Shown: positions 2,562 to 41,385 of the stretch, piece by piece
Layout: each line of letters begins with the position of its first letter
Position numbering within the stretch: position 1 is the stretch's first letter
Assembly: GCA_964187785.1 (NCBI GenBank)
Contig: OZ076412.1
Coordinates: 30,256,001-30,320,000 of the forward strand
DNA length: 64,000 bases
Origin: Amphiscolops sp. MND2022
Taxonomy: Eukaryota
Reading direction: 5' to 3'
Position numbers and translations under genes: made by a program
The notes under the pieces: model-generated
The model's database searches: none
What the model was told of the DNA's origin: nothing
What the model saw: only the letters and a program-made list of their open reading frames with translations

Positions 2562-3332
2562 TCGCACATCGCCCGCCAACAGCTCTTATCGCAATCACAA
2601 ACTGATTTCCTTTCGACGGTATCATATATCAGCATGTATTACATAATGATTCTAGCTTCAACAATTGGTACACTTGGAAGCCAATTAAATGAGATCTTTG
2701 ACATTAAGTGAAAGTAGACATCCAGTGTTTTATTTGACAACGTTTTTGATGCATACATAGTGTGGCTCCAAACTTTATTTCTAGATGGTTGAAAGATGCG
2801 CTTTGACCGTTCTCCGTGCGCAAGTTTCGATTGATACTGGAAACCTTCTAGAATCTGAGAACATCAAGAAAGAAAGATGATTGTTCGCTTAACAGGTTCA
2901 TGTATTTCAGCTTGTTTTGCATTATCAGTGTGCATTATTGGCATAAATTGAATGTTCGTTTCTGTTTCATGGATTGATTTTTTAATTCTCCCACTTCTGT
3001 TGGAACCAATTTAAAGCATCTCGATTTTTCTTATTCAATTTATGTTCCGGTTGCGTAACTTTAATTCAACATCTTTCCTTGTTATCGTTTTCATACCACA
3101 ATCAGACATGAAATGATCTTCGAATCGCAGGCTACTCAAATAGTTGTGAAATGGATAATAAGAAGGAAAACATTTGCTGGTTGGAAATATTCACAAATGA
3201 AATCTTTGTTCGATCTCGTAATATATGATAAACGGTTGCCAGACAAAAGCGCCCCAATCAAAGGCTACAATAAATGGCTCTTATGTACCATGAGCTTCAA
3301 GTTCTTCACTACAATTGTGATTAATGACATGA

Positions 3333-3858
3333 TTTTAGCCGGCGCATTTTAACAAAATGAGCCCGACTATTACAGTGGCAAGTTTTTCTCTTTTTTTCGT
3401 TAATAACAGAATGTGTGCGTAGTGGACACTTTTTACAGAACTACTAAACTACTGGACCGGCAAACGGAAACGCATCTAAGTTAGTGCAAAGGGTCCCCCT
3501 TTCATTTACTCCTTTTTTAACGTAAGATACAAAACCGGACGAGACTATAGGGTCACCTTCAAGTTTTTTGATTTTGCAGCAAACTGAAGTTTCAAAAAGC
3601 TCAAAGGGTCCCCCTTTCAAGTTTTTCGGCACTCGGAGACTGTTTCAAAATTTTTATTTCTTGTTTTTTTTTCGAAAATTTTTTCAAATATTTTTCTCTC
3701 GAATTTTTTAAATGTCTCCGAATTGTCCATTCAATTTTTTTTGATATTTTGCAACAAACTGGATTTTCAAAAAAGCCAAAAAGCCCTATTACAATTTTGA
3801 AAATTTTTCCATTTTGAGCCTTAGATTAAGCGCCGAGTTTAGACGTTCCCGTCTTGTT
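3333..3858 (+). mobile_element. Non-autonomous Helentron/DINE-1-like element (HINE) copy
   Basis: 5' TTTTAGCCGGCGC...GCCCGACTATTACAGTG; 3' CTTAGATTAAGCGCCGAG...GACGTTCCCGTCTTGTT; same termini recur across the window; no TSD seen. Confidence 0.7.
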
Positions 3859-14547: not shown

Positions 14548-14718
14548 ATGCAACAACCGTCCGCACCCAATGGAGGGTCTGGCGACTACGAGCAAGAAGT
14601 TCCGGAGAGGAGACACTCGAACCAGGATGATGAGGAGAATGGAGATGAAGATGATCACGAGCAACAGGACCACCACGAGAGCGAAGACGAGGAGACCATC
14701 CGAGAAGAAACTGCCCTG
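14548..14718 (+). CDS. Exon 1 (acidic, MQQPSAPNGG...DEETIREETAL)
   Basis: ATG 14548 preceded by in-frame TAG (could instead be an acceptor); donor GTTGAT 14719, phase 0. Confidence 0.55.
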
Positions 14719-20700: not shown

Positions 20701-23700
20701 CGCAGTTGAAGGGGGACCCTTTGGAGAAAAAACCTTTCGAAAAAAAGTCTCTTAATGCCGAAAAACTGAAAGGGGGGACCCTTTGGGATTTTCAAACACC
20801 TAATTTGTTGTCAAATATAAAAGAAATTGAATGGGGGACCCTTTGGAGAGAAAAAATGTTTAGAAAAAAAGTCTCACAATGCCGAAAAACTGAAAGGGGG
20901 ACCCTTTGTGGTTTTTCATTATCCATTCTGTCGCAAAACATCAAAAAATTGAAAGGGGTATTTTTGTTTTCGGGAAAAAATCTCACAGTGCTGAAAAAAA
21001 ACTGAAAAGGGGGACCCTTTGGGATTTTCCAACATCCATTCTGTCGCAAAACAGGGAAAAAAATGAAGGGGGACCCTTTGATCTCGCCCGGTATGGTATG
21101 TTACGCGGGAAAACAGAAAAAACCTTTTTGGTTTAGTTCGCTAGGCCAAATGGTGCAATTTGGTGCAATAATATTTTGTAGAACTTTTAAGAACTATTTT
21201 AAGAACTAATCATAAACGAAACGCGCTATCATCCTGGCAAACGTGAAATCATACGGATATGATATGAAACATTTTGGATTCAGTTCGCTTTTCATAGTTT
21301 TGTTAAGTGAAAACGTAAGAATTTGAAGTGAAATTTTTTCACGAAAACAGTCGCACAGTGCCGAAAAACCCAAAAGGGCCCTCTAAACTCGCAAAAGGCT
21401 TTGTCCTTGTTGAATCAAATATCACTAGGGGTCCTTTGATAAATTGAAATTTTTTCCAAAGTCGAACAGTGTCGAAAAAAAAAACAAAAGGGGGTTCCCT
21501 ATGGTCTTCCCTTTTATCTTTGCCAGCTTGATGAAAATTTCGTCTAGCACAGGATTCTATCCCACTTTCTCCGGATTCCCTGGCCCCATCACCTGGCAGA
21601 GAAACTCGTGTTAACCTCTAGAGCAGCAGCTATTGGCAGAAACTGGTAGAAAAAATTCCACTACGAAACGAAAAATATAGGCTATTTAAATGAGTGTTTT
21701 ATAATTTGAAAATTTTACATCATGTTTACCATTATAATCGTCAGGGCAGTAATAGATTAAGTTCAACATGAAAATCAAGAGTTGTACTTGTGTATTTACC
21801 ATGTGTGTTTTGAATATACACATTGTCGGAATTTCACTCATTAGAAACGGGGTCATTTTGTTACATTTCGAACCCAATTTTAGCTCGTTTACACAATGGA
21901 GTGGCGAACATGGCTGGTGCCAGTTGCAGTGTGGACTTGGGGCGTCACCATGCGAGTGTGGGAGGAACTGCTTCAGAGTGTTCTCCCGGAGACAGAGACG
22001 GGTACACTTCTCACGACGAAGCCTCTTGGCTGATAGACCAACATGCCGACAATGTGCCAATCCATCCCCTCACTCAACATCGAAACTCCCTCTCCTCTTC
22101 CGACATGCACACTCCAACATCCAGATCAGTCGCTTCCTGGGACCTCATCCGGTTCCCTCGTTCCTTCTATGAGGTAAAATTTTTCTCGTTGAGATGATAG
22201 TTTGGTTGTCTAGCCTGGTTTGAAGCGGGAAACAGTTTTGCCCTTGGTGCTCTCATGGCTTTGCTACTCTGTTTGCTTCCAAGACTTTATGATTGGATTC
22301 CTTCGGTCACAGACGGCAATCTACAAAAGTTTTCATTTCCCGTTCAATTTCAAGTAGTAGTTTTCTGTAGTTTTTGATAATTTTTCCGTAAATAGTCAAA
22401 TTTGAAAATTTAGTTCAACTTGTTCCTTGACAGTTTTTGTCGGCGCGTTTTCCTTTAAGGAAAAGAGCTCGACTATTACAGTGACTAGTTTGTTTTCGTC
22501 AGACTACAGAATGTATGCGTAGTGGACACGTTTTACAGAACTACTAAACTACTGGACCGGAAACGCATCTAAGTTAGGCCAAAGGGTCCCCTTTTCATTT
22601 ACACCATTTTAACGTAAGATACAAAACGGGACGAGACTATAGCCCCCCTTAACGTAACTCAAGTTTCAAAAAGTCCAAAGGGTCTCCCCTCTCAAGTTTT
22701 TGGCACTATGAGACTGTTTCGAAATTATTTTTCGTTTTTTTTCGAAAATTTTTTTGATGTCTCAAAGGGTCCCCTCAATTTTTTGATAATTTGCAACATA
22801 CTGGACTTTCAAAAACCTCCAAGGGTCCCCTTTTTACAATTTTGCGCCTTTTCAGCCTTAGATATACAGTAAACCCTCGATTTTCCGCCACGCGATTATC
22901 CGCCAACTTTGGTCATCCGCCATAAATCTACCGGGACATTTTAATATAACACCCGCGTCTAAGCTCCCTTGATTTACCGCCACTCTCACTTATCCGCCAT
23001 AATTTGCGCTGGACCAATGGTGGCGGATAATCGAGGGTTTACAGTAGCGCCGAATTTAGACGTTCCCGTCTTGTTCGTTATTATTGAGCACGCTTAGCTC
23101 GTGAATTTTTAAATCACTGTTTAGATATTTGATTTGAATAAGTTAGTGATTCATCACTACTACAACTAAGCTACCAAAGTCATGTGAACAAACTCTGAGA
23201 TCATTGTTTTTCAATCAATAAAGCCTGAATGGTAAGTCAGAATTTGCCGGCAAATACTTAAAATTTAAAGAAGTCAAAAGCTCTCTCTATATCATGGTGC
23301 CGCAAAATGCTACAGAATCTACCCAGCAACAAGCAGATCTTGAAACGAGTCTTCACAGCATAAAAGCTAAAATCTCTTCCCTTCATTGCATTTTTGCTCT
23401 CCCCTTCGCATAATCATTCAACAGAATTTGTTTCTTTTTTTGTAATTCTTAAAATCTCCTTGAAGACAGATACTAAAATCACGAAGTTATTTTGTAGTTT
23501 GTCCAAGTTAGTTATTTTTCTTTTTTAAAACGGGTGATGTTAATACCCGGTCTAGAGGTGCATATCGTGGCTTGTGCACACGATATTTCAATGAGGCAAA
23601 AACATCATGGATTCAATTAGAATTACAACAGATCAAAGTAACCGCCTCAGTCAAATTATAACGCTAATGGAGGAACGTTTGAGTGAAGTTCAAGCTTTGA

Positions 23701-26700
23701 ATTCTCAAATACACGCCACATTGCAAGTCGATGACATTGAGGCAGCCATAACATCTTCTGTGGATCTGAATGATCAAATATTCATCAATATTGACACAAT
23801 AAAACGTTTCCTTCATAATTTGAACCAAACTGCTGAATCTTCTGGCTTTAACACGGGTGCTTCCTCGCATGCCCTGAACAGTAATACAAACAGGAACAAT
23901 ACAAGATTACCAAAATTTAATCTTCCTACTTTCAGTGGCAATTACAAAACTGGACGTCTTTCATTGATCTTTTCAACAGTTCCGTTGATTCAAATTCTAC
24001 TTTCACAAATTCACAAAAGTTGCAATATTTGAAAGCTTCATTAACAGCCGATGCAGGCAAACTTTTGTCCTCTTTTACTGTAACGGATAATAATATGAAA
24101 CAGCGCTCGAAGTTTTAAAAAAACGATTTGACAACCCACGTATGATTCCACGAGCTCATGTCCAAAGCATCGACCAAAAATGCGAAACGACAATGGCAAG
24201 GACTTGCGGAACCTATTTGAAGGAAAAGAAAAACATCGTTTAAGGTTGCGAACATTAGGTCTGCCGGTGAAATATTACGATCTTTCTCGTTTTCCTTGTA
24301 ACAGAACAATTAGACTTAGAAACTCGACGACAATGGCGAAATTGCTTCACCTGGTACAAGCTTACGAACATATGATCGACTAAAAACATTCATTGAGACA
24401 AGATGCAATGCTCTTGAAGCGTCAACGCACAGTCCGAAACGATTTTACAGTGAACACGAGCATCCATCGCAACAGAAAGTCCAACAACATAATCAAAGCT
24501 ATGCAGGAACACAGTCCGCCGAAAACAGCCTTTGTTGTGGACAAGAACACAGACTTTACACTTGTCCAAAGTACAATGCATTGTTTATTGACGAGAAAAC
24601 AGACTTATAAAAGAAAAATGATTATGCTTCAATTGCCTTCGGTATGGTCATCGTCTTGAAGACTGCTCAAGTGCTAGTAAATGCAAAGAATGTAATCGTT
24701 CTCACCACGCATCGCTTCATCGACAAAAGGATTTCAAAGCTAATTCAGCTACAGAAGAGGTTCAGAAGACAGACGAAACAATTGTTACCTCTCACAGTGC
24801 CACAGGTTCCGAACAAGTAATTTTACCTGCAGCAGTAGTTCAAGTGCAGGGTAAGCACGGTGTTGTTTCCTTACGGGCTCTTCTAGATTCTGGCTCTCTG
24901 GCATCTTTCCTCACCGACGATGCTTCTCAGAAACTACAGTTACCGAAACAACGCAACTCAATTACAGGTTCCGCTTTAGGTGGTAAAACAAGTACTTGCA
25001 CTGGTATCATAGATCTTCAGATACCAAATTCTTTTGTTAACCCGTTGCGCGTTACAGCTTTTGTTCTTCCCAAATTAACACAAATTATTCCAATGCAAAT
25101 TGTTGACATCGGATTATTTGATTGAACAGACTCATCAAAGTAAATCAAGTTCAAGCGTTTCATTGCTTGGATACTTCTTCGCAGAAGTTTTGGGAACTTG
25201 AAAACGTATCGCTGGTTTCAAAACACACTGATGAACAATTATCATGCGAGCAACACTTCCTTGATACAATCACGCGATAACATTGGACCATTTTTTGTCC
25301 AATTGCCTTTCAAAGACAATGGATCAATCTTAGGTGATTCTCTACAAACCGCTCAGAGACGGTTTCTCAGGTTGGAAAAAGACAAGTTGCCAGAAGTGAA
25401 GCAACATTACACTGACTTCATAAACGAGTATTTGACACTTGGTCACATGGAAGTTGTCCCTGAAAACGAAATTGAAATCAAATCTTCTGAATCCTTCTAC
25501 TTACCCCATCACTTTGTTACCAAGGCTGACAGTACTAACACAAAATTCCGAGTCGTGTTTCATGCTTCAGCAAAAACAACTTTAAACAGTTCTTTGAATA
25601 GTAACCTAATGGTGAAGACCAAAATTTCAGTGACTTATTTGACATTCTCCTTCGACTTCGATTTCACAAGTTTGTGCTTAGTGCCGACATAGCAAAAATG
25701 TATCGCCAAGTTGCATAAACCTGACCGTGATTTCCATCGCGTTTTTTTGGCATGAAAACGACAAAGAACCCATCCAGCATTTGCGAATGACACGTGTTAC
25801 ATACGGTATTACTTCTAGCTTTCATTCTATTCGGTTATTACTTGAGTTAGCCAAAAGTGCGCCTCAATAATTCGTCGGATTATTGAAAATGACAAGTATA
25901 AAGACGATTTACTCACCAGTTGTTTCTATTTTGAAGAAGCAAAGGACTTACAAGACCAACTCATCGAAACTTTACAGACAGGCGGCTTCCCTTTACGGTT
26001 CATCCAACAGTTATGAATTGATCAAACGATTACCTGGAACTCTCCGAGAAATCAAAGATGATATAACTTTTCAAGATGAAGAATACAAAATTAAGGCTCT
26101 GGGAATTGTGTGGAGGCCTAATCTCGATTCTTTCGTTTTTACTGTTAAGCTTGCAGACAAACCCCCGACAACAAAAAGCTGTGCTTTCTGAAATACCTAG
26201 TTTATTCGATCCTCTCGGGTTTTTTCTCACCAGTACTTCTTAAATTCAAATGTTTCATTCAAAGGTTATGGAAACTCAACTTAGGTTGGGACCAATCACT
26301 GCCCCCGTCTATCTTACAGGAATGGTTGTTGCTACGACAAAGTTTGACTGCTATTCAGAACTTTTCAATTGCTCGTTGTCTTTTACCAGACCGACAAACT
26401 TCAGTACAACACGTTGAACTTCACTTGTTCTCTGATGCCTCGGAGAAAGCTTATGTGGCTGCCATTTATGCTGCTCTCCGTTGCGATGACGCAAAGAGTT
26501 GTCATCTGATAGCCTCAAAGACAAGAGTTGCACCTGTTAAATCACTTTCTTTGCCCCGACTGGAGCTATTTGCTGCAGTTCTCTGTGTGAATCTACTTGA
26601 GACAGTCCTCAGAGTTTTAGTTGTTTTCTTCGATGACAGATTGTCACTCCACTGTTGGACAGATTCAACTATTGTTTTATCGAGGTTATCAAAGCCAGCT

Positions 26701-29700
26701 AGTTCGTAGCAAACTTTTATTCGTAGCAGCATCTCTAAAATTCAATCTTTTTTATCATTCGAAAAATGGAATCATGTTGCCAGTGACGGAAACCCGGCTG
26801 ATATTTGCTCTCGTGGAGTCCCTGCAGACAATATTGCAAGCAATTCTTTGTAGTGGCACGGACCATCTTGGTTATCCGAAAAATCTTCTCGGCCACATTC
26901 TCCAATTATTCCAGCTGGTATTTTCCCAATTCAAACAGTCGAGGCTATTGTTCCAAATTGTCAAACCAGCCACCTTCAATCAACTTTAGGTTTTCTCGAT
27001 TTTGACAGATTCAATAGCTTCCGAAAAATAAATCAAGTTTTTTGTTACATTTTACGTTTTTATTATTTCTGCTTTAGCAGGAATATTATTGTAACCTCAA
27101 ACTGTCTACTTTTTTGTTCAGTACAATTCTTGTCGTGATACTGAATAATTCAAATATTTCGTTCGGCAGTGACAATAAGCGTGAGAATTAAATTCCTCAA
27201 GCTGCCAACGACAATTCAATTCTAGTGCGATGGAACGAGCGAGTGGTACTTATCCATTTGTATGCTGACGTCATTGAGATGAAGCGAGCGAATGTTCGTA
27301 ATTGTGCTTTCGTTGCCCCGAGTTATTGAGATGAAGCGAATGAGTGTTAATTATTCGTTCGTTGAGAGCTTCGCCTGCATTCAAATGCGAATGCGAAACT
27401 CCGTCTACGCTTAGTAGTTATATTTTCTTTAGTCCGAGAAGAATTAAAGGCGGTGTAAACTTGTACAGTGAATAATTGTGCGCTAAATAATGATTAAACA
27501 AGAGTGTATTGGTATTCCAGATATGATTCTATTATTAATGAAAGATTGAAGCAGAAATAATTTTGTGCCTCGGAGGGACCTATTTTGTAACAGAAAGCGC
27601 TGACTAAAAATTGCTTGATCAAAATTATCTGAAAGAGCACATACTTTTACCTGGAGTAAAAAGGGGTGCCATTAAAAGTATTCAAAAATGGAGCAAAGTA
27701 GTGATAGTAAAACTATTGTATGATTGAAATTATAAAGCTCCAAAGCATTTTTTTGCAGAAATTCATTTTGCTTCCATCAAACTTTTACGTTTCATTTATT
27801 TTTGTGAATTGCAAGATGAAAATTCCCTGTTACACAGTCAAGATATTTTACCTAAAGGTAATTTTACAAAAATCTTGCTCCGTTTCTTTATCCTGCCACT
27901 AAATTAGTCGAGTTGGTGGTCGTTTGACCCAAGGTGACTTTTCACAACTGAAGAAACATCCTGATCTGATTTCGAAGGTTCGAAAATTGTCAAAATGTTA
28001 ATTGCAGATGCCCATTCTGATACTTTACATGGTGGAGTTGACTTAGTTCTGAACACAATTAGGCAGACTTGTATCAATTCACTTGTACCGAGCCATTTCC
28101 ACTTATGGGTGATCTCCCTCTAGAAAGAGTTTCAGCAGTTCGTACTTTCAATGACATTGGAATGGATTTTACTAGACCTGTTTTTACTAAGGTTTTCTCC
28201 CACCGTAAGGAACCCTGTGAAAATTTACGTTTGTCTCTGTTTGTCTACAAAAGCATGCCATTTAGAGGTTGTTACATCTTTACATGAAGAAGCGTGTCTA
28301 GCAGCAATTGCACGGTTTTGTGCCCTTAAAGGTCGACTAACAAAAATCTTCTCTGACAATGCAACTAACTTTCTCGCCTTAAGAACAGACTTAGACACCG
28401 GATTTGCAATTGATGCTTTCAATCGACACTTGAAGCAGAACTTGTCAACAAAAGCAATCGAATGGCTATTTATACCAGAACATGCACCACACTTTGGAGA
28501 TCTTTGGGAAACATCGATCAAGTCCATGAAACATCATCTACGAAAAGTCATGAAGAAGCATATCCTACTAATTGAACATTTCACAACCTTAATTACACAA
28601 ATTGAATGCATGCTGAACTCAAGACCATTGACAGCCTTATCCACTGACCCTAATGATTTGAGTGCTATTACTCCAGGACATTACTTAATTGGCTCGCCGA
28701 TCAACCTAATTCCCGACATGAATTCCAAAAAGACAAATCGTTTAAGCAACCTCAAAGATTTTCAGCAATTGCAGACTATAAGAAACCAGTTTTGGAAGGA
28801 ATGGCATCGAAATTACATAACCTCTCTGCAAATTAGAAAAAAAATGATTGAACGATAGTAACAACTTCCACATAGTAGACCTTGTACTAGTTGCTGATGA
28901 TAATTGTCGAGTTCTTGATTGGCCTCTCGCTCGAATTACCAAACTCTTCAAAGGAAACGATACCCGCGCACGTGTAGTCGAAGTTAAAACTGCAAAATGG
29001 GTCAGCAACAGGCCCATCAGTAAGTTGAGAAAGTTACCCCTTTCAAAAATTGCCTACTCGCAGTTCAATTCATTTTATTCTGAAGCTTGCAATTTTAATC
29101 ACTTGTCAGTCAATCATTAGTTACCATTATCGCCTTCCTATTTTGTTTATTTGTTCTGAGTAACATAGCATTAAAAGCGACGTCTTCGTGATGCTCACAC
29201 TTTCATTCACTTATTTCATTACCATTCTTGGAGTTTTCTCTATAATTATCACCTTTTATTTCCCAAATCCTAATTGACTTTGTTTCAGTAACCATGTCAA
29301 TTGCTTCACCCCTCTTGTCATTTTGAAACTAGTCAATTACTGTAATTTCCGATGGTGTAAACTGGTCAATTTACGAAGCTGTGTCAACTAGTGTAACGTC
29401 CTATCAATGCGTGTAATGTGTGACAAGTGTAAAACTTCCAAAAAAATTATTCGCGCTCTGATTGGACAAAAATCGAACTAACAGGATCCTGCTAGTTCGT
29501 TACCGGGATGTGTATCGTAATGCTGTTAGTTCAAGGCGTGGGTGAATATGGTGATTCATCACTACTACAACTAAGCTACCAAAGTCATGTGAACAAAGTC
29601 TGAGATCATTGTTTTTCAGTCAATAAAACCTGAATAGTAAGTCGAAATTTGCCGGCAAATACTTAAAATTTAAAGAAGTCAAAAGCTCTCTATAAGTAAT

Positions 29701-32700
29701 ATATTTCACGTCATTTCCTTACGTCATTGTTTGTTGTTGGTTGCATTTATCCCAATCCACATTGTAGTCTTCCTGATATGTTAAATACAAACGTTCTTGC
29801 AACCGTTTCACTTTGCAAGGTAGAAGTATTGATCTTAGAAACTAATCTGAAGAAAGTGGTTTTTTAAAAGGAGCTAAAATAGAAGAATAAAGTTTGTTTC
29901 GCGGGGCGAACGCCGAATAAGCCGGGGGTCGACGCTCTTTCTGGTACGTTATTTGCAGCCCAATGGTCTAGCAACATGATATAGTGCCGATGTGTCCGCA
30001 TTCAATTCATAGGCTGCTTTTAGTCGGCGCTTTTTTTGAGGAAAAAGCCCGACTATTACAGTGGGTAGTTTTTTTTCGTCAAACTACATAGCTGACCCTG
30101 TATGTACCTCTTTTTAGTACAGACTTTAATCGGTTTAGAGGGAACCCAGCGGTCGGGAGTTCGAGTCCCTGCTTCAGCCAGAAACTTTTTCTTGCGTTTA
30201 CAAAACCGGATGAGACTGAAGGATTCCCCTTTCAATGTTTTTCGGCACTGAGACTTTCGATATTTTTTTCATGTCTGCAAAGATCCCCCTTCACTTTTTT
30301 AATAGTTTGCAACAAACTGGAGTTTCAAGAAGCCCAAAGGGTCCCCCTTTTACATTTTTCGGCAATATGAAACTGTGTCAAAATTCTCATTTTTCTGAAA
30401 TTAGGTTCTCAATAGATACCCACAAATAATTTGTTTTCAATGTCCGAAATTTCGACTTAATATCCGGAGTAAAGCGCTATATGCGAATTTTTGACGTCTT
30501 ATGCGAACTATATTGTTTTACAAGGAGGAGGGGGAGGTTCGAAAACAGGTGTTTTTTTTTAAAAAAAAACGCCCTACGCATATTTTAGAAACTATATATT
30601 TTAGCGTTTTTTGAGCCTTAGGGATAGCGCCGACTTTAGACGTTCCCGTCTTATTGTTATTTTGAACGAACACTTGGTAAAGATGCTTAAATGTTCTTGT
30701 TTTTCTGTAGGTGGCTGACAAAGAAGACGACATTCTGCACAGAGAAGGTGGATACAGTTATTGTCTGCCGCACCACTCTCATCACATTACGTCTCAGCCC
30801 CCGCTGTTCCCTTCTGCTCACACTCACGGTGCTTCTACTGACCCCAGTTCTAGGTACACGCATTTCATAAGCACCGTTTCAAAGCTAGATTGTGCCTAAA
30901 TACTGATCAAAAGCGAAATCCTTGTTTGAATTACTATCTGAAACTACTCACCAATTTACATATTTTAGTTTTCAAACTAATGGGTTGAAATTCTGGGGGC
31001 CAAAAATAAGCGAGTTTCACTGAAGAAGACGCTCGCTGAGCACCATAGTGTTTTTCCGCCCTGAACTGCTTTGGCGACATATTTTTATGACTCGAGAGTA
31101 GCCAATAAACTATAGAAAATGTTTGGTTCTTTTCGCTTCATTTCAGGCTTTTATCGAAAACATTCAGTGCTCTCTTTTTAAAAAAAAGTATGTTAAGTAG
31201 CTACTTTTTGCCGGTTAACTAGGGATTTTCCTATCCACAAAAACATGCATTAGTTGCATGAAACTATCAATAATTGAGAAAAACGGGGCATTTTTCCAAA
31301 AAGTAGAGATATCTCCATGAAGACACGAACCTCATTTTTTCACCATTAAACTTTGTGAAAGATTCTCTATCTTTGGAGTATAAAATTTGGGGATGAAATA
31401 CGGACGAAAAGTTTATTCTATGATTGTATGAAATGTTTGCGAAGATATCACCAACACCATTCAAGCTCATCTGCACAACAGCAGTCACAGTCATCCGCTT
31501 CCAACAATGTCGATTCTTGTTTCCTTTTTGACCCCAATGAAGTGGAGACTCAGCTGGAGAACCAACTGGGGGCATCCGCCTGTGGACCCACTGCGGTTGT
31601 CAATGTACTGGTGAGTATCACTGCCCTTTGTCTTATAGAAATATAACGTTTTCCATGAATTGTGCAAAATTCTAAATCGAAATGTCGTGCAGTGTTTTGA
31701 GGAAGAATTAATAATTGATGGATTCGGAGACCTCTGCGACCTGAGAATTGTTTGAAAAGCTGTAGATTGTTAGACCTTTCGAACAAACAAATGAGAGCGT
31801 TGATTTTTGTAGAAATTTCTGTTGCAATGTCTGTATACTGAGCTGCAATGAATATTTCTAATTGTGTATGTGTGTGTTTTGAAGAGGATAATGGGATACC
31901 AAGTGAAACCGTACTTTGTGGCCAGAAGAGTGGACTTCAGACAGAGAGACAACCTGGCCCCCATGCCCGAGTACCTTATGTCCAGAAGTGTGGCTGGTTC
32001 CACCCATGAAGATCTTATCAGAGGTTAGTCAAGTCATTATACTATATGAACAATACTGTGTTTGTTCGTTTCTACTGGCTCATCCGGACATTTTCAAAAG
32101 CTAAAATACTTTGTCGCAAGTCTTAGTCGCTCATATATTTACATGTTTCATAGATTTGGATTTTTCATTTCCCGCCCATATTTCGATATGAAAAAAGAAA
32201 ATTAACTTTTATTAGTTAAAAATTTGTCATGTTCAAATTTCATAGTCAAATTGAAGGACTTTACTCATAGAATTCAACTGTTATAAAAGTAGTTTTGTGT
32301 GATATGTATTTGTAGAGATTTTTGGACGTTTTTGGTCGATCTCAAAATGCATAAAAAGCCAAAAATTGATTGTGAATTGTGAATGATTTTTGCAGTTTTC
32401 AAATATATTCGTAGGTTAGATTATCCCAAAATTTTCAGGCCTATATTATCCTAAATTATCGAGTCTTGCTACGTTTTTTTCCGTTCACGTTATTTCTTGC
32501 TGCCTTTTTTTACCTTGTTTCTCAAATCAAGGCCCCAAATGAATTGAAAGGTCTAGTTTCCACGCTCTAGCCTTCAGAAAATGTAGTGGTGTGGAAATGT
32601 CGCCTTCAGAAAATTTAAAAAATCATGTCTGCAAATTTCTATAAAATTTGATTCTATACCGAGAAACTTTTATATATGATATTCTTTTTCATTTATTTTG

Positions 32701-35700
32701 CATAATTTTGGAGTTGCAGGAATATTGTTGACCCGATGTCTAAAAGTATTTCAGAACTTCGTTTTGGAATAAAATATTCGTTTATTGACTTATGTTTTAC
32801 CGGTCTATCTAGGCGAAAATACGGTGTCGAATCTGGTATGCAGCTTTTGGGAATGTACACGCAACAGTACAGTGTGTTTCGCGTTTAAGGGATAGAGAAC
32901 GTGACTCAGGGCGAAGTGAGTGGACGGTTCTTCTGTTTCCATCCTGCGAGGGAAGTATGTTTGCGTCATTGGCTCATCTACTGGATGAAGAAGGGCTGTG
33001 TGCCAGTGCTGACCTTGAACTATCAGAAGAAACACCCGGAGGCCAACCCCAACGTTGTTACCAGTGATAGTTGGCACCACCAGGTACACACAATTTCAGC
33101 TACGTTGCACAGAGAGTATTGATTGGATGTATGCATGCAATGCATAGTTGAAAGGTTGACTTCTCTCAATAATATGGTGAAATTTTGACTCAAAAGTGAG
33201 CATTTTCTCTTTTCAACATTTCTGTAGTTTTTGATGTTTTCTTAATAGCATCATCCATTTGTTAAATTCGAAGCACAACCTTAGGGCATCATGCTAAAAA
33301 TCAGTTTTTTCTATGCATCTGGTTGAACACGTTATGAGAAATTTTGATCTGCAAGGTCGCTCATTGGGATGTTTTTCCCTCATAGCAAGCTACAGGACCA
33401 TTTTTGGGGGGTTTGGGTGTTTTTCGAAGCTGTTAGGGAGATTTCATTAATATCTACATTGAGCAGGCTATCATCGGAGTGCACAACTCGACAGTGTTCC
33501 TAACCAACATGGCGGAACAGGTGCACGTGGCCAGCATCGCCTTCTACCTGAGCAGTGAGTCGAAGCTGCAAGTGCACTGGAGAGACATCTGGTGCAGGTT
33601 TGACGAGGACACCAGTCTGCAGACACTCGCCCAGCAGCCACACCAAGACCCCAGGTGGACCGACTTCAACGTCCTCGGTTGGTAATAAGCACAGGGGGGG
33701 GGGGGGGGGCTACTTTGTAAATTTCAATCACTGATCGCAAACTAACTTTCCATACATCTCTGAACTCTGGACATTAGATTAATTTCAATGCACGGCGTGG
33801 CAAATTTCATTGCAATGCATAGACTAGCGATTCCCTGGTCTATTGGTCTATTGAAAAAAGCGCAGGACAAATACCCGTTTTTAGCACGATGCGCAAAAAA
33901 TTCTCCACATCCCGGCAACAGTCCAGCATCTGACTGTAACCACGGCAAAGCAAAACCTGCCACCTGAAAACTTGTGCAAACTTTTGTTTTTGAAAAAAGT
34001 TTTAACACCGCTGATGATCTATTTAGCTGCCGCGCCATAAATTTTCGCATTGCGTTGATAATTCATTGATTTTCAAGGAGTTTAATTCATTGTATTGCTA
34101 TTGCATTTTGATGCTTAAAAATGCCGCATTGCAAACCACTATTAAAGATACAAATTGACCCATGTAACCAGGATTTTGACATCGCTAAATTTTTTGCCAA
34201 TCCCCTGATTTTGAAAGCACAAAGTTTTCTTCAATCCGTTAAATGTTTTACTTCAAGTATTTCTCAAAATTAAATGATAATTTAGACTGGAATTTTTTAT
34301 ACTGTGGGTTTAGGACTTTTAAGAATTGGAATGTTTCGAAATTCTTTCTGAAACTCTGTGTATGCTCCGAGGAATTTTTGAATTTGTACATTTTGTCAAT
34401 TGTCGCAAGTTTGAATATCTTACGAAATTACGGAAAATTTCTGCGCGGCAGCTAAATTGCTCATCACCGGTGTCAAAACTCTGCAAATGACATTCATAGT
34501 TAATGTTTCCGAAGTGATTTTATATTTTTGGAACTTCAATGAATGTATAATTTACAGTAGAAGTCCGGTATCAACCAGTGAATTGCGTTAGCGGGTCGCT
34601 AAGCGGAAGCGATGTGTAAATTTAGTGGTAGCGAATAAGCCATAATCATTAATGGTTAGCGGCCGCTTAGCGGCATTCTAAATTTAAGATGGAAAAATAA
34701 TACCCGTCAGGCAACTAATAGAATTTAATCAGAGAATTGAAGCCTTCAAGAATACTCTAAGCGTCTCATGATACTGCCACGGTTCAAAGACGTTTCTCGG
34801 TAAGCGGAATAATGTTGATTGTCCGACGAAACTGTAACACATGTTGAAAGGAAAATTGTTCTAATTAGAATGAAAGGGAAAATGTCCTATCTCTCAAATA
34901 AAGAAAGGTCTAAATTTAAGCGAAGACTTCTTTTGGCGCGTCTTGAAGAACTGCATATGAGTCACATATTCAATCTGACTTTAATTAATTAACAAAGTGA
35001 GTCAATGAGTATTTCACAAAAGTCAATAAGTCATGTCATTCACATATACGGCATTTGGCGGGAGGTTTGTTTTGAGCCAGCATATCACAAGTCCAGAACT
35101 TTTGAAAACCTGTTTACAGGGCGAGTGAAAGTACCATAAATAGTTGATATTTCACAAGATCGGACAACCCCATCTGAGCCTTCAATATTTGATTTAACTC
35201 GTCCCATTGGCCAGAGTCCACGAGGAGTGAAGTCCTCCCATAACCAAACGAGGTCTCCCACTTCTAAATTTGGTCCCCACATATCTTGGTCCATTTTGAC
35301 CTTGTTGTCAAGTCCGGCAAATATTTTCTCATGAAGCGCTCCCAAAAATTGTTCATGAGTTGTTGCAAGACTCGCCAGTTGCCATTATGATCCTGATTGA
35401 GATTTCGTGTCTTTAAAATTGCAGAAGGCGTAATGTTTGTCGGTCTTCCCAGTAAGAAATGATTTGGCGTCAAAGGTTTGTCATCACGGTGGTCGGAAGA
35501 GACCGTTGTCAGGGGTCTGTTGTTCATTATATTTTCGATCTCGATAGTCGAAGTTTCCAATGTAGGCGGCGTCAGCTGTCGTGTTCGGCAATTTTGAAGA
35601 ATGTACCTTTGAAGACTCTGATGAGCCTTTCCCAAGCTGCTCCAAAATGTGGTGCTGTTGGCGGGTTAAAAACCCAGGTTATACCCTTGTGTAAAAGTCT

Positions 35701-38700
35701 GTCTTGCAAAACAGAGGCTTTGCTTTGCAGTTTCTCAAGTTCATATTTTAAGGTATTGTTTGCTCCAATGAAGCTCGTACCGTTGTCCGATCGGATTATT
35801 TCCGGTCGTCCTCGGCGGCTGATGAATAGTTGTGTTGCTAAAAGTGTATCTTCTGTTGACAAAGTCTCGATAACTTCAGTGTGCACTGCACTAGTTACGA
35901 GACATGTGAAATGCAGTATGTAACGTTTTTCATGGCTTCGTCGGTTCCTTACGGGAAAAGGTCCGAGATAGTCACCTCCTGTTGTCACGAACGGGTGAGA
36001 GATGTTTTTTGGCAGGCGGTCTCCCATGAGTGGTTGTCGAATGTCCTGGCGAAGTCTCCGGCAGTGTGTGCATTTGCTAATTATTGATCGTAGAACTTTT
36101 CTTGATCGAAGAATCCTTAAAGTGCTGCTCTTGAATACTCCAGTCCACTATGACCGTTTGCGATATGAATGTGTTTTATTAGTAGATCAATTGTCCAATC
36201 TTCTGCATCCGAAATAATAGGATTTTTGCTCGTCAGTAAATACTGTGCTTTTGATAACCGTCCACGAGCGCGGAAAACGCCCGAGTTGTCGATGAATGGC
36301 TGTAGAGAGTGCAATCGGCTTTTAGTTGATAGTTCATTGCCTTTCTGTAAGGCTGTGATGTCGTCTCCAAATTGTCGTCTTTGTGAAGTTCTTATCATGT
36401 AAGAAAACGCTTTGGTCAGGTGTCGAAGTTTCAGGGTTTTGTCTACATTCAGATTTCGTATGATGTCTGCTAACAACAGTACGAAAGGGATCTAAGAAGT
36501 CGGTCCCAATTACTGAATCTCTGTGGGTCGATTGTTTCTTCAAATGTGTGCTGTTCGATAGTCGTACTTGATGCTGCAAATGTTGAGTGTTGAACGTAGG
36601 TAACATCTGATGTATATGATAGCAGTTTTTTCGGCCATTCTTCGGGTGGTAAAAGCAGAAATTTGGATCCTTTAATCCATCTGCTACTGGCAGTTATTTC
36701 GTCGGCTTGGTAACCTCGGGTTCCGTCGCCGGCTGGATTGCTCTCAGTTGGAACGTAGTTCCATTGATTAGCTGCGGTTGTTTCTAAAATGATATTGAGT
36801 CTGTTGGCAATGAAAATCTTGTCTTTTGTCTGCGGTTTTGATCCATTTTAGAACTGCTGCACCGTCTGTCCAACAGAAAGTGCTATTGATGAACAATCGG
36901 TGCTCTTTCAAGATGAAAATGGCGAGTCGAGTTACGTTGGCCGCTGCTTGTAGCCCCAAGTTGCGTACTGTCATCCGTTTCAGTTATGTTACTCTGTTTT
37001 TACCAATGATGAAGCGAATTTGAACAGATTGGTCTTTGTTGATGATGCGAAAATAAGCTACGTTGGCGATAGCTTTTTCTGATGCGTCGTTGAAGATATG
37101 AAGCTCCACTGCCGCGGGTGAACTGTCTTTGAAGTAATGTCGAGGGATCGCTAGTGTCTGATATTTCTGTTTCCTTGATCCAAGATGGAAGGTCGGGTAA
37201 GCGGCTCATACCAAGTTTGGTGTCCCAGCTCAAGTGTTGCTTCCTTGTCTCCTGGAGAGTTTGTCGCAGACGAATTGTTAATGGTCCTGTCAACCCAAGT
37301 GGGTCAAATATTGAAGACGTCCACTTGAGAAGTTCTCTTTGGGTCATGTAATCCTTATCTAAGAAGACTAGAAACTTTTCTCGGTCGATGAGGTGTCAGT
37401 TGAAGATTCCATTGAACACCAAGCACTCGTTGAGTTTTGTTGGCGAAAAAATCGTCAATAGCGTTGGGTACTAGATGTCGTTGTTCTGTTTGATGTAGGA
37501 AGTGTAAATTATTGGCGCTCCATTTGGTTAAATGAAAACCTCCCAGAACAAGTGTATTTCTCAGTTCCTCCGCAACAAATGTTGCTGCGTCCACTATGTC
37601 GAAAGTTGTGAATAAGTCGTCCATGTAGATGTCCTCTGTGATAATTCGCTGTATTTCTGGTCTGTGGGCGTGCTCAGCTGCACATCTTTGAACCGCATAA
37701 CAAGCTACACAGGGCGAATCCGTTGCTCCAAAGATGTGGCTTGTATACTGGTACGTGATCTGCTGTCCATTTTTCGTCCACAGAAAACGCAAGAAAAGTT
37801 GATCTTCGGGTTTCACCTTTACCTTCATAAACATTGCCTCTATGTCGGCAGAGACTGCAACTGTTCCTTGTCGAAATCTCATGACAGGTCCTGTCAGGTT
37901 ACAAAGGTCGGGTCCTGTTAGTAAGATGCTGTTCACTGATACTCCTTGATATGTACTACTGCGTTGGTCACTCTTCTCCGTGTTTGTTGATGTTAGTAAC
38001 CGGATGATGCTTAAGAAACCAAGCTTTGGCTGCTGTATCGAATTCAGGGTACACTTCGGTGATGTATCCTCTGGCGACATCGGAGTCAATTGCTTCTTGG
38101 TAGAGATTCTTTAGATGGGGGTCCTTATTGAGTCGTTGCTGTAGTGATCTCAGTTGTTGGTCGGCAACTATCCGATTGTTCGGTAGTTTGACGTCGTCTT
38201 TCCACAGAAGTTCGATTTCGTAATGGCCATTAACAAGTTTAGTGGTCGATTCTAGAACATTCAAGGCCATTTTGTCTTCTTGTGAGTAGCTATAAACTTC
38301 CTAAACTTCCTCGTTTACTCCCGTTGTCGATTTTTTTCCGGTTTGAAACTTGATACAAATCGCGATCAGAATCATCCGTTCGTGGGTGTTGTTGATAATT
38401 ACTGTGCTGTAGTTGGTGAGGCGGACGTTCCCCCGGCGACTGTCCATCCTAAAAGAGTGTTGATTGCCTTAGGGCTAATTGGTGGTCCATTGATTGATCA
38501 CTCCTCGACTCAATATTAGGTCGTATGCATCCATTCCAATGAGTAGAGAAACGTTTTCGTTGGCTAAAGTAGGCATTACTATATATGACTTAAGTGTGGG
38601 TTTTTCTGGCAAATTTCATTGATAATGTCAGGTTGAACGTTGTTCAGATTCAGTCGAGGAACAGTTACAACATTGTCAAGAATGTAGTGCTGCGTTGAAG

Positions 38701-41385
38701 ATCTGTAAAGTCCTATCGTGACTTGAAGAGATGCGACTAAGGGTTGATTAGTTGAATGAACCCCAGCCACTGTTATTGTTTCGTTGGGTTCCAGGTCAGG
38801 AACAAGTTGTCTTGCGACGGCATCGGTCAGTAGCGTAAGAGAACTCCCGGAATCCAAAAGAGCGTAGGTGTCCAATGTTCTCGAACCACTTGACAATGTT
38901 ATTGGTAGAATCGGCAACAAAGAAGGCGATCTCATTGCGCGGTTCAGTGTCGTGGTGGCTGTTATCGTTGCAGGTTGACGGTCGTGGTGAAGTAGTGTGT
39001 GATGATGTTTATCACATCCTGGCTGTCGGAATGTAGTAGTTGATTTGCAGTCTTTGAAGAGATGCGGGCTAAGGCAATTGAAGCTTAACTTCAATTTTTT
39101 CACGTGTTCCATCCTTTGGCTGACTGAAAGGTGACGAAAGTGCTCGCACTGTCGAAGTAGTGGGCATTGCTGGTTCTGTGGGCAGAAATACTTTTTAATT
39201 TTGACGTCAACTTGTCGTTGGCTGTTCTTCGCTTTTTGTCTGTCAGAAAATTTTGGGAGTAATTGGTGGCTGGAAGTTCGTCGTGATGTTTGGTAGATCT
39301 TCACAAGCGTTGGCATGTTCTTCGATCCACTCAGCTATGTGTGTCGTCCACGGAGCTATATATGTCTTTCAAACATAAGTTTCGCAGAGCAATATTTTCT
39401 TTTAGTTGATCCTCTTTGCCCTTTTTATTGACCATTTTGTTCGAAGCAACTTGTTTCTCTCAACAGTTTTCTTTTGGATGCTTTGTATTTCAGAGAAGAA
39501 AATGGTAGGCTTGAGTTCACGACACCTCTTATGATTTGCTTCCATAAAAGTACGTTACAAATGGCACTTTCAAGGTTGACTTTCGAACGTTTGAGTCTGT
39601 TGAAGAACTGTTAATTGAGTCCCTTGTGGATTAAGTCAAAATGTTTAAGGGAAAATTGTCCTAGTTTGAATGTAGGGGAAAATGTCCTATCTCTCAAATA
39701 AAGAAAAGGTCTAACTTTAAGTGAAGACTTCTTTTGGCGCGTCTTGAAGAACTGCACATGAGTCACATATTCAATCTGACTTCAGTTGATTAACAAAGTG
39801 AGTCAGTGAGTAGTTCACAAAAGTTAAGAGTTATTCACAACACAAGACAACTAATTTCAATGAATTTCAATTTTTAGAGGCCGCTTAGAATAAAGCGGAA
39901 TAAGCTAAAAGCGCATATCTAAAGCGAAGTTGGTTATCAGCTAATTTTTAAAGGCGAGTCAATACGCTGGTATCAACTATTTCACTAATGCTTATGCTCT
40001 TTTTTCTTTAAAAAATGAATTTGATGTAATAATAAGCAAGCAAATTTTGATTGATAGGACAAGTGTGCTCTATGCTGCGAATGAAGAAGCGAATTGACAA
40101 AGCAACTTTGATTGACTCGGGTGCTAACGTGAATGGAATGGCAAGTGAAAATATGGAATCGGTAGATGCCGCAATCAACGGTGGCGGCGGTATCCAATCA
40201 GAGAACGCAATGGCAGTTAACCAATCAAATCGCAGGTCCCAATCATATCCGACCGGGGTGTTGCGAGACATCGGCAATAATGGTGACGAAGGCAATTATG
40301 TCCCTTCTGTGGCCAATAATGTACAAAATGGGGGTGGTGGCTCTGTATCGCTAAGAGACCAAACTTCTCTCTGCAATTCTCTACTACCTTCTCACATCGT
40401 CATTCCTTCCATAGTGCAAGCAGGTTTGTGTGACCCCCTAAAACAATCCTTGTTCTTCGCCTTCAAGTGACTTCGAAATTTTCAACTGATTTGACAACTC
40501 ATTAAAGATAGGAAAATGGAACCTCGTTTTTCAAATGAGCTTCTGTATGTGTATTAGTCTCTCGAAGTCACTCTCACAAATAGAGCCCCGAACAGTTAAC
40601 CGATTAACCGGTTAATTAATTTTTAATAGAATAATGCAAAAATAGGTAATGCATTTTTAATAGGTAATGCAAAAAATAGCTCACCGTTTAGACCCGAGCC
40701 CAGTCGATGAATGGATGGTCTCTACAATGACCTAAAAATCAACCTGAAGAACGAATAAAAGCTACCAATGCTAATCCAAGCAGAGTTTTGTATAATTATT
40801 ATAATTTTGCTGGTCATAATTTTGGCCACATTTTAAGCTCTCGGACGCTACTTTTGTCTTGTAATGAATATTCGATTGAGTTTCAGTTAAGCGATTCATT
40901 GCAATTTTTTTTGTTGAAAATCACCTTTTTTGTTCAACGAATGTGATGCCTAATAACCAGTTATTTTAAACGATTAATGGATTAAGCAAAAATTTTAACC
41001 GGTCCAGGCTCTACTCACAACATAATCTGCTTGGTATAGGCCCTCCGAAACTATTCGAGGTCTTATTTTTTCTAGACGTAGTATTGAATATCTAATGGTC
41101 TGTGAAAATATGGAAGTAGTCTCGTAGGTTTTCTCATACTCAGTTCAGATGGGGTTTGAATGGCTGAAGTTACAAAATAGTTGTTCTCAGGATTGCTGTT
41201 TATAGATCATTGACTTCTGAAACTATCGTTTGCTAATTTTTTTAAGCGATAAAATATGATACTTTCGTTTTTAAAAGTATTTTTTTGCAGGTGTGACTAT
41301 GTTCTGCAGAACTGGTGCAACCACTACATTTCAAGAACTCATGCAATGCGACGAGCTGGCAATAAGTTCCAACGAGGGCACTTGA
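14548..41385 (+). CDS. Uncharacterised ~965-aa protein: long disordered N-terminus plus papain/C39-like domain; join(14548..14718,15833..16153,16761..17040,17767..17910,18194..18338,19499..19731,21884..22173,30711..30853,31445..31610,31885..32023,32890..33083,33467..33677,40058..40423,41291..41385)
   Basis: All 13 junctions are GT-AG and phase-compatible; 2898 nt = 965 codons plus TGA, no internal stop. Exons are GC-richer islands in AT-rich TE-filled DNA. The end of exon 3 is the least certain junction. Confidence 0.72.
15833..16153 (+). CDS. Exon 2 (Ser/Asn-rich)
   Basis: AG 15831-15832; open frame; CAG|GTTGGT donor, phase 0. Confidence 0.65.
16761..17040 (+). CDS. Exon 3 (Ser/His-rich)
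   Basis: ACAACAG acceptor; donor GTAAAG 17041 phase 1 (an alternative phase-1 donor exists at 16861). Confidence 0.55.
17767..17910 (+). CDS. Exon 4
   Basis: TATGCAG acceptor; strong GTGAGT donor 17911, phase 1. Confidence 0.7.
18194..18338 (+). CDS. Exon 5
   Basis: TTTTCCCCAG acceptor; CAG|GTCTGA donor, phase 2. Confidence 0.65.
18865..19406 (+). mobile_element. Complete HINE copy with tRNA-like module (intron 5)
   Basis: 5' TTTTTAGTCGGCGC; B-box GGTTCGAGTCCC ~19061; 3' GGCGCCGACTTGGGCCGTTCCCGGCTTGTT. Confidence 0.75.
19499..19731 (+). CDS. Exon 6 (Ser/Thr/Ala-rich)
   Basis: GCTGCAG acceptor phase 2; donor GTGCGT 19732 phase 1. Confidence 0.65.
20522..21370 (-). mobile_element. HINE-family copy with internal ~60-bp GGGGGACCCTTTGG tandem modules; right end approximate
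   Basis: Reverse 3' end AACAAGCCGGGACCGGCCCAAGTCG at 20522; six or more GAAAGGGGGACCCTTTG units at 20700-21080. Confidence 0.6.
21884..22173 (+). CDS. Exon 7
   Basis: CAATTTTAG acceptor phase 1; GAG|GTAAAA donor phase 0. Confidence 0.7.
22434..23075 (+). mobile_element. HINE copy interrupted by a pogo-like MITE
   Basis: 5' TTTTTGTCGGCGCG...GCTCGACTATTACAGTG; 3' end split at the TA of CTTAGATATAGCGCCGA. Confidence 0.75.
22867..23044. mobile_element. Tc1/mariner-superfamily (pogo/Tigger-like) MITE, 178 bp
   Basis: TA duplicated at 22865-22866 and 23045-23046; ~24-bp TIR CAGTAAACCCTCGATTTTCCGCCA / TGGCGGATAATCGAGGGTTTACAG; internal ATCCGCCA repeats. Confidence 0.9.
23146..23294 (+). repeat. 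5' LTR core of BEL/Pao element 1
   Basis: About 6 substitutions versus 29551-29692 over ~140 bp (manual count); ends TATCA before the PBS. Confidence 0.85.
29551..29695 (+). repeat. 3' LTR core of BEL/Pao element 1
   Basis: Direct repeat of 23146-23290; contains AATAAA. Confidence 0.85.
30018..30655 (+). mobile_element. Complete HINE copy with tRNA-like module
   Basis: 5' TTTTAGTCGGCGC...AAGCCCGACTATTACAGTG; GGGAGTTCGAGTCCC ~30155-30170; 3' GATAGCGCCGACTTTAGACGTTCCCGTCTT. Confidence 0.75.
30711..30853 (+). CDS. Exon 8 (His/Pro/Ser-rich)
   Basis: TTTTCTGTAG acceptor phase 0; TAG|GTACAC donor phase 2. Confidence 0.75.
31445..31610 (+). CDS. Exon 9 (start of conserved domain, QLGASACGPTAVVNVL)
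   Basis: AG 31443-31444 phase 2; CTG|GTGAGT donor phase 0. Confidence 0.8.
31885..32023 (+). CDS. Exon 10 (RIMGY...PMPEYLMSRSVAGSTHEDLIR)
   Basis: TTTTGAAG acceptor; G|GTTAGT donor phase 1. This reading frame is not in the supplied ORF list. Confidence 0.8.
32890..33083 (+). CDS. Exon 11 (GRFFCFHP...WLIYWMKKGCVPVLTLN...DSWHHQ)
   Basis: TTTAAG acceptor phase 1; CAG|GTACAC donor phase 0. Confidence 0.82.
33467..33677 (+). CDS. Exon 12 (AIIGVHNSTVFLTN...DPRWTDFNVL)
   Basis: GAGCAG acceptor phase 0; G|GTTGGT donor phase 1. Confidence 0.82.
33998..34480. repeat. ~50-bp imperfect inverted repeat pair (MITE-like), ~480 bp span
   Basis: AGTTTTAACACCGCTGATGATCTATTTAGCTGCCGCGCCATAAATTTT (33998-34045) versus the reverse complement of 34433-34480; no TSD identified. 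Confidence 0.65.
34842..39839 (-). mobile_element. BEL/Pao LTR retrotransposon relic in intron 12, antisense to the host gene, 5-bp TSD ACACA
   Basis: TG...CA LTRs 34842-35044 and 39642-39839; ACACA at 34837-34841 and 39840-39844; minus-strand gag knuckle (NCLSPH..C...C...HHTLLH), protease LDSGSS, RT YMDD, RNase H, integrase (SDNGTSF...PPTAPHFGAAWERL), C-terminal WPMGRV. Gag 5' part deleted; frameshifted. Confidence 0.93.
40058..40423 (+). CDS. Exon 13 (GQVCSMLR...HIVIPSIVQA)
   Basis: TTGATAG acceptor phase 1 completes NVLGQV; CAG|GTTTGT donor phase 1. Confidence 0.78.
40581..41013. mobile_element. hAT-like MITE (433 bp) in intron 13
   Basis: Imperfect TIR TAGAGCCCCGAACAGTTAA / TTAACCGGTCCAGGCTCTA; 8-bp flanks CTCACAAA and CTCACAAC (7/8 match). 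Confidence 0.75.
41291..41385 (+). CDS. Terminal exon 14 (GVTMFCRTG...ELMQCDEL...T*)
   Basis: TTTTTTGCAG acceptor phase 1; TGA 41383-41385. This reading frame is not in the supplied ORF list. Confidence 0.75.

Follow-up and report, generated by a model that had tools for sequence, protein, structure and literature searches.

A predicted C39-like papain-fold cysteine enzyme of an undescribed eukaryotic family in the genome of the acoel Amphiscolops sp. MND2022

In this work, we analysed a window of 64,000 nucleotides from the acoel Amphiscolops sp. MND2022 (GenBank assembly GCA_964187785.1, contig OZ076412.1, positions 30,256,001 to 30,320,000 of the forward strand; positions given below without a contig are those of the window), focusing on a multi-exon gene of the + strand. 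The stretch under study is quite probably the catalytic core of a single-copy gene coding for a C39-like papain-fold cysteine enzyme, which belongs to an orphan eukaryotic family. The encoded protein lacks a signal peptide, being of the cytosolic type, and is conserved over a domain of about 270 amino acids (aa). The data support its reading as an intact enzyme, a predicted thiol peptidase, amidase, or transpeptidase, and that of the family as a new and undescribed one within a well-known superfamily rather than a new kind of system, novelty being judged against Pfam, NCBIfam, and the PDB. An intact Cys-His-Asn enzyme was also what the original prediction, made on the letters of the window, had proposed; fold, conservation, and similarity to known families were all checked, and the proposal is upheld by them.

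Gene structure and catalytic motifs

Four + strand open-frame pieces (31359-31643, 31852-32025, 32889-33119, and 33437-33682) contain the two motifs that had been noticed in the original prediction after splicing, a Gln-Cys motif and a His...Asn motif. The sequence, the exon borders, and the colinear profile matches described below confirm both. The four exons (A-D, Table 1) splice into a single frame with canonical GT-AG borders and compatible phases, and the spliced frame carries Gln-x5-Cys-Gly and Trp-His-His-Gln...Thr-Asn. The first motif, NQLGASACGPTAVVNVL, occupies 31560-31610, and the second, DSWHHQ followed across an intron by AIIGVHNSTVFLTN, extends from 33066 to 33508.

A profile obtained from 50 homologues matches the four frames colinearly, at profile positions 2-48, 46-91, 91-153, and 152-221, with E-values of 1.3e-7, 2.3e-11, 1.2e-23, and 7.7e-15 for exons A, B, C, and D, respectively; the six-frame translation of the rest of the window did not give any match better than E ~2. 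Since the profile matches four frames in order and nothing else in the window, the motifs are not due to chance. Moreover, exon C alone, probed against 1.84 billion cluster representatives, retrieved 151 proteins at E <= 0.001, many of which are 600-1500 aa long and are matched about 200 aa from their C-terminus. The spliced product can be aligned without interruption with full-length proteins over about 220 residues, with E ~1e-50. The domain gene is present in a single copy in the 1.07-Gb assembly.

The exon junctions are also spanned by intron-less DNA from other sources: a sequence from ENA ERZ26859043 (L160) corresponds to positions 119-502 of the cDNA with 80.8% identity and includes the A/B and B/C junctions, and two other sequences, from GCA_013332895.1 and from a metagenome scaffold (L161 and L162), correspond to positions 476-771 (70.5%) and include the C/D junction.

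These sequences have features of their own. The first, located at 3034-3417 of a 20.7-kb contig (P0001), is a partial intron-less copy of exons A-C having the motif ACE instead of ACG; it breaks off after LTLN, and a second copy (P0002) has the same tail beyond this point. The locus resembles a processed retrocopy that underwent duplication, perhaps carried by a mobile element. L161 and L162 show the gene of a relative (P0037), in which an intron interrupts exon C, the C/D intron is missing, and the one following NVLG is retained; therefore, intron positions have shifted between related species.

Conservation of the catalytic residues

According to the multialignment of 73 sequences, ranging from animals to dinoflagellates, Gln29, Ser33, Cys35, Gly36, Asp149, Trp151, His152, His153, Gln154, and Asn168 are invariant. 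Further invariant columns are Arg65, Tyr74, Arg78, Ala81-Gly82, Asn134, Gln136, and Asp194, and the invariant residues are 26 in total. The catalytic set of clan CA, that is Gln, Cys, His, and Asn in this order, is conserved in all 73 sequences and is present in the window. The expectation that these residues would be conserved in homologues is thus borne out from sponge to dinoflagellate. The copy in the window keeps the Gln, the Cys, both His, and the Asn, and agrees with the family in 50 of the 59 columns that are conserved at >= 90%.

The family was also compared by hhalign with 14 C39 domains and with 18 phytochelatin synthases from cyanobacterial genomes. Global alignments with the two sets were uninformative, and local ones were usable. 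In the latter, Gln, Cys, His, and Asn-Pro of the family pair with Gln, Cys, His, and Asp-Pro of the C39 domains (P 0.003), and the Gln-x5-Cys-Gly motif, together with the helix that follows it, pairs exactly with that of the phytochelatin synthases (P 0.006).

Predicted fold and comparison with known families

The structure of the domain was predicted with AlphaFold on the orthologue from Lingula, using family alignments. The model had a predicted local distance difference test (pLDDT) of 92.4 and a predicted TM score (pTM) of 0.86 without the C-terminal tail, and of 94.0 and 0.91, respectively, with the tail, which forms two strands and a helix within the domain. In the model, the Cys is at the N-terminus of the first long helix (Cys35 opens helix 35-46), the His is at the start of a strand (His152 opens strand 151-160), and the Asn is just past the next strand, which is the arrangement of the clan CA fold.

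The best Foldseek matches in the PDB were all from the papain clan, with the cyanobacterial phytochelatin synthase Alr0975 at the top, followed by C39 domains. In the exhaustive comparison with VIA-align, the double-glycine peptidase LahT150 scored Z 15.0 (133/142 residues, 2.3 A), PeiR Z 14.3-15.0, 'P210 CD lyase' Z 14.5-14.7, PCAT1 Z ~14, ComA Z 13.7, Alr0975 Z 13.3-13.5, and classical papains Z ~8-10. Among the 50 entries listed, those recognised are papain-clan proteins, and C39- and phytochelatin-synthase-type proteins take most of the top seven places (Z 12-15). A search of the ESM Atlas by shape retrieved the family's own clusters (TM 0.88-0.91, with no Pfam 38.1 family) and next to them only Peptidase_C39 and C39_2 clusters. 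The papain/C39-like fold that had been suggested from the motifs is thus recovered in the Lingula model, and more specifically as a C39/phytochelatin-synthase-like one. On the basis of the model, the domain belongs to the C39-like branch of papain-fold modules and combines the core of the bacteriocin-processing double-glycine peptidases with inserted helices and loops, which add about 120 aa.

The C39 peptidases (LahT150, 6mpz; ComA, 5xe8; PCAT1, 8vp3; PF03412 and PF13529) are the closest in structure (Z 13.7-15.0, 2.1-2.6 A). The alignment takes in almost all of the C39 domain, of 135-150 aa, with Gln, Cys, His, and acid/amide-Pro following one another as in the family, and its last strand corresponds to the conserved tail strand SGITLF of the family. 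Besides the insertions, the family differs from C39 in the Asn that replaces Asp and in the invariance of a His-His-Gln triplet and of many Arg residues. Furthermore, C39 is the N-terminal domain of an ABC exporter or the partner of a double-glycine leader, whereas the family is eukaryotic, with the domain placed at the C-terminus or standing alone; it shows no ABC-transporter fusion and is not known to have a double-glycine leader as substrate, and its long forms contain no other Pfam domain. The gathering thresholds of PF03412 and PF13529 were passed by neither the exons nor 16 full-length homologues.

The pseudomurein endoisopeptidase PeiR (C71, 8z4h) and 'P210 CD lyase' (22oc) align over 131-164 residues with 10-13% identity; unlike the eukaryotic family, they are of archaeal-virus or bacterial origin. 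They show that isopeptide bonds, too, are among the targets of this branch of the fold. No paper on 'P210 CD lyase' (PDB 22oc) was found.

In humans, ACTMAP (C19orf54), GUCD1, and BIVM are cytosolic eukaryotic proteins with C39-like domains, as is the present family. A survey of papain-like families places BIVM, GUCD1, and C19orf54 as human C39-like orphans in papain 'cluster I', and its passages covered here contain nothing corresponding to our family (PMC10318531). In a feature search of the ESM clusters, those of ACTMAP-like_C (0.95) and BIVM (0.93) came directly after the family's own. An ACTMAP identity was rejected: ACTMAP is a separate gene in this genome, the hhalign probability against it is 0.3%, and PF21646 gave no match at E <= 10. 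As for BIVM (PF28452), the Atlas, annotated with Pfam 38.1, assigns no common family to the family's clusters, and the BIVM cluster is at rank 14; it is this annotation, and not a match of the PF28452 model, which argues against a BIVM identity. Since no tetrapod member was found, the family would not be the orthologue of a human gene. A viral-tegument-like deubiquitinase family was considered as well, with no such PDB entry among the 50 structural matches listed.

Two other loci of the same genome were observed in these comparisons. A genuine phytochelatin-synthase exon (GHFS...LVLD, 41 bits) lies on another contig (L001, G000:C1:44979012-44979170), and an ACTMAP-like gene (82.7 bits) is found at L171, G000:C3:81437433-81437771. 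Together with the gene of the window, they imply that the animal has at least three distinct cytosolic enzymes of the C39/phytochelatin-synthase type.

Members and taxonomic distribution of the family

The members of the family can be divided into long and short forms. The long forms (600-1500 aa), to which the protein of this animal belongs, were found in a brachiopod, molluscs, nemerteans, annelids, hemichordates, crustaceans, and many insect orders, and their N-termini are lineage-specific and disordered. The short forms (about 290 aa, consisting of the domain alone in fishes) are those of coelacanth, lungfish, bichir, sturgeon, sharks, gar, bowfin, and many teleosts, including Danio, Oryzias, and Takifugu, and also of echinoderms, a coral, a sponge, and a dinoflagellate. 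The best 120 matches to the lungfish query were all fishes, with no tetrapod, and the homologue lists obtained included no dipteran and no nematode. The absence of members found in tetrapods and in the usual fly and worm models may explain why the family has escaped study.

The family had been predicted to be uncharacterised, and this agrees with all the searches carried out. Pfam did not match any of the four single exons; on full-length homologues (16 for Pfam), no Pfam or NCBIfam model passed its threshold or gave anything meaningful, and a sequence-profile search of the PDB retrieved no chain even at E <= 10. The sub-threshold Pfam echoes recurring among 50 members were Phytochelatin (12/50, best E 0.0012) and Peptidase_C39_2 (10/50, best E 0.0053). 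Nearly all annotated members are 'uncharacterized' or 'hypothetical', and the few automatic names conflict with each other (ubiquitinyl hydrolase 1, pyroglutamyl-peptidase 1, and glutathione gamma-glutamylcysteinyltransferase); we treated these names as guesses at the superfamily level.

In the N-terminal extensions, no module is conserved between phyla or shared with the acoel, and Pfam revealed no domain fusion in the long forms except for one weak, sub-threshold M42 echo, which is probably a gene-model artefact. Two environmental members were checked for bacterial relatives with informative operons, and both have a eukaryote-like context (e.g., beside an EDRF1 gene).

The arthropod long forms (e.g., P0022 and P0099, of insects) possess a conserved N-terminal module of about 100 aa, at residues ~150-270, with no Pfam match; it is matched by about 100 of 166 N-termini and is absent from the lophotrochozoan, hemichordate, and acoel extensions.

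Proposed mechanism

In the mechanism that we propose, the Cys thiolate of SACG would be activated by the first His of WHHQ, which in turn would be oriented by the Asn of LTN. The Cys would attack the carbonyl of a peptide, isopeptide, or amide bond, and the oxyanion would be stabilised by the Gln located six residues before the Cys and by the backbone NH of the latter. The thioester acyl-enzyme so formed could be resolved either by water (hydrolase) or by an amine (transpeptidase).

The 26 invariant residues, including several Arg and the His-His-Gln triplet, point to one conserved and probably acidic substrate. Its class would be that of a single, highly conserved, acidic or carboxylate-bearing molecule, rather than the targets of bulk proteolysis, and possible candidates are a conserved protein terminus, a small conjugate, or a peptide of the gamma-glutamyl type. 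Such a conservation, from dinoflagellates and sponges to fishes, almost certainly reflects one specific conserved job. The broader proposal, that these proteins represent an ancient, undescribed eukaryotic family of C39-like (iso)peptidases or transpeptidases, i.e., a new family of clan CA acting on one universally conserved cytosolic substrate, is one that we regard with about as much credence as doubt.

The chemistry of the known relatives comprises Gly-Gly leader cleavage, isopeptide hydrolysis, gamma-glutamyl transpeptidation, and removal of the actin N-terminus. Given this variety, the discovery of the substrate could reveal an unrecognised pathway of protein maturation or of small peptides. 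The family is experimentally accessible, since medaka, Danio species, Takifugu, sea urchins, many insects, and regenerating acoels carry members.

Points against the assignment and alternative explanations

Some of the data weigh against the assignment as an active C39-like enzyme. The model was obtained for the Lingula orthologue, which shares about 40% identity with the protein of the window, and not for the product of the window itself. The hhalign probabilities are low (7-10%), though the residue pairings are in line with the superpositions. The clustering of Cys, His, and Asn would follow from the topology of the model, the superposition scores, and the profile alignment, and not from measured distances; in any case, a complete triad would not by itself be proof of catalysis. 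The stretch was found in no RNA run, the four runs holding it being genomic contigs with no spliced joints, so that expression and the exact acceptor of exon A are predictions from genomic DNA. Lastly, the copy of the window deviates at 9 of the 59 conserved columns, including a Pro to Met change directly after the catalytic Asn.

These last points would also be expected of a dead scaffold (pseudo-enzyme) or, in this animal, of a decaying or unexpressed gene, for which the divergence of the copy (about 40% identity with its relatives) and the two Pao-type retroelements in its introns also speak. We consider this very improbable: the gene is single-copy and retains all the catalytic and most of the invariant residues; the six C-terminal exons all have open frames between GT-AG borders; and the invariance of Gln, Cys, His, and Asn in 73 sequences is unlike that of pseudo-enzymes. 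Moreover, in the region 30600-33800 all the indel differences among the four genomic runs of the species (11/11) fall outside the exons, and, of the six substitutions in exons, half are synonymous and the other three conservative, a variation that, within this small sample, fits purifying selection.

The other two alternatives concern the reaction. A phytochelatin-synthase-like enzyme would be a gamma-glutamylcysteine dipeptidyl transpeptidase, or an amidase cleaving glutathione, with a gamma-Glu-Cys thioester on the Cys. The top Foldseek rank of Nostoc Alr0975 (C83, 2btw; PF05023), which aligns with the family model over ~150-163 residues and shares the Gln-x5-Cys-Gly helix paired by hhalign and a similar spacing from the His to the third residue (16 residues in the family, 18 in the cyanobacterial phytochelatin synthases fetched), speaks for it, as do the prevalence of Phytochelatin among the Pfam echoes, the UniRef name of a Polarella member (glutathione gamma-glutamylcysteinyltransferase), and the many invariant Arg, which would suit a carboxylate-rich substrate. 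Against it, that UniRef name is automatic, no member reaches the PF05023 cut-off, C39 superposes better (2.1-2.3 A vs. 3.3 A), and the third residue is Asn, not Asp. The genome's own phytochelatin synthase, a candidate that we rejected, has its true exon on a different contig and no profile similarity to the family. This alternative is therefore unlikely. A protease or isopeptidase of ubiquitin or of ubiquitin-like modifiers, i.e., a new deubiquitinase-type family cutting after a C-terminal Gly-Gly, appears rather improbable too. The C39 peptidases, which have the closest fold, do cleave after Gly-Gly, UfSP2, UfSP1, ZUFSP, and ATG4 are among the structural matches (Z 9.9-11.6), the protein is of the cytosolic type and very conserved, and one member carries the UniRef name 'Ubiquitinyl hydrolase 1'. 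This name, however, is automatic as well; the proteases of ubiquitin-like modifiers are outscored by C39, PeiR, and phytochelatin synthase and do not exceed staphopain or streptopain, and no Pfam deubiquitinase model rises above noise in the members. The predicted complex of the Lingula domain with the ubiquitin of this genome (score 0.07, mark 0.34) carries no weight either way on binding.

Extent of the gene

The features of the C39-like gene are reported in Table 1. The original prediction had the exon with the first motif start at 31545 and the gene end at an apparent NVLGW stop; both limits proved wrong, and exons E and F, which encode core strands of the fold, had been missed. The donor of exon A at 31610 is firm. 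Its acceptor at 31379 is the best fit but tentative, and those at 31412, 31445, and 31466 are likewise in phase with the donor at 30853. On the contrary, the acceptor at 31543 is out of phase with this donor and in phase only with weaker ones, such as 30747. Since the conserved strand CFLFDPNEV (31519-31545) is part of the domain, and 31543 does not fit the phase of the best upstream donor, exon A must start upstream of 31545.

At the 3' border of exon D, the donor G/GTTGGT (33677/33678) overlaps the TAA of the apparent NVLGW stop. This is not the end of the gene because all homologues run past NVLG into a conserved tail, whose consensus starts with QVVNVLRE and continues to ...EL (NVLGQVVNVLRE...TSHVxIPAAYxSGITLF). 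In the window this tail corresponds to exons E and F. The former, which covers the C-terminal helix and a core strand, has a frame open over 40051-40467, and its acceptor (...gattgatag/GACAAG) completes a split Gly codon. The frame of the latter is matched by the profile of the homologues' tails (E 7.8e-5), with the acceptor tttttttgcag/GTGTGA. The annotation of the genome can thus be corrected by adding two exons on the far side of a 6.4-kb intron, in which a retroelement is located.

The upstream exons were derived from open frames and splice-site scoring only, and the automatic scoring was too ambiguous to settle the N-terminal model; the best-supported junctions are 17910/18194 and 22173/30711, with 30711-30853 as the last upstream exon.

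Table 1. Exons and catalytic codons of the C39-like gene (window positions)
Feature	Position	Strand	Description
Upstream exons (tentative)	14548-30853	+	Low-complexity N-terminal extension rich in Ser/His/Gln/Asp
Exon A	31379-31610	+	First strand of the domain and catalytic helix; acceptor tentative, donor CTG/GTGAGT
Oxyanion Gln codon (exon A)	31563-31565	+	
Nucleophile Cys codon (exon A)	31581-31583	+	
Exon B	31885-32023	+	Helical insert with invariant Arg, Tyr, and Ser-Arg-x-x-Ala-Gly (PEYLMSRSVAG); GT-AG borders
Exon C	32890-33083	+	GRFF, WLIYW, strand VPVLTLNYQ, DSWHHQ
Catalytic His codon (exon C)	33075-33077	+	
Second invariant His codon (exon C)	33078-33080	+	
Exon D	33467-33677	+	AIIGVHNSTVFLTNM, onward to NVL-G
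Catalytic Asn codon (exon D)	33506-33508	+	
Exon E	40058-40423	+	(G)QVCSMLRMKKR, Gly/Asn/Ser-rich linker of ~100 aa, then LPSHIVIPSIVQA(G)
Exon F (last coding)	41291-41385	+	(G)VTMFCRTGATTTFQELMQCDELAISSNEGT (GVTMFCRTG...QELMQCDEL...); stop TGA 41383-41385

Repeats and neighbouring sequences

Two remnants of BEL/Pao-type retroelements with long terminal repeats (LTRs) lie in introns of the gene. One, on the - strand at 35088-39334, encodes a reverse transcriptase and an integrase core and sits in the 6.4-kb intron between exons D and E; the other, on the + strand at 23595-29117, encodes a Pao peptidase A17 (E 2e-39) and DUF5641.

A poly-G run at 33694-33712, just past the donor of exon D, is not of constant length among the runs of this species (7 bases out/1 in). 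The regions 32205-32418 and 30600-30706 reach a contig depth of 10^4-10^5 times that of the neighbouring single-copy sequence and are very high-copy intronic repeats; a skip of 111 bases at 32269-32381 is found in all four runs (4/4). Far upstream, at 849-2558 on the + strand, a separate gene shows frames for two RRM-type RNA-binding domains followed by a tail rich in Arg/Gly/Pro/Tyr.

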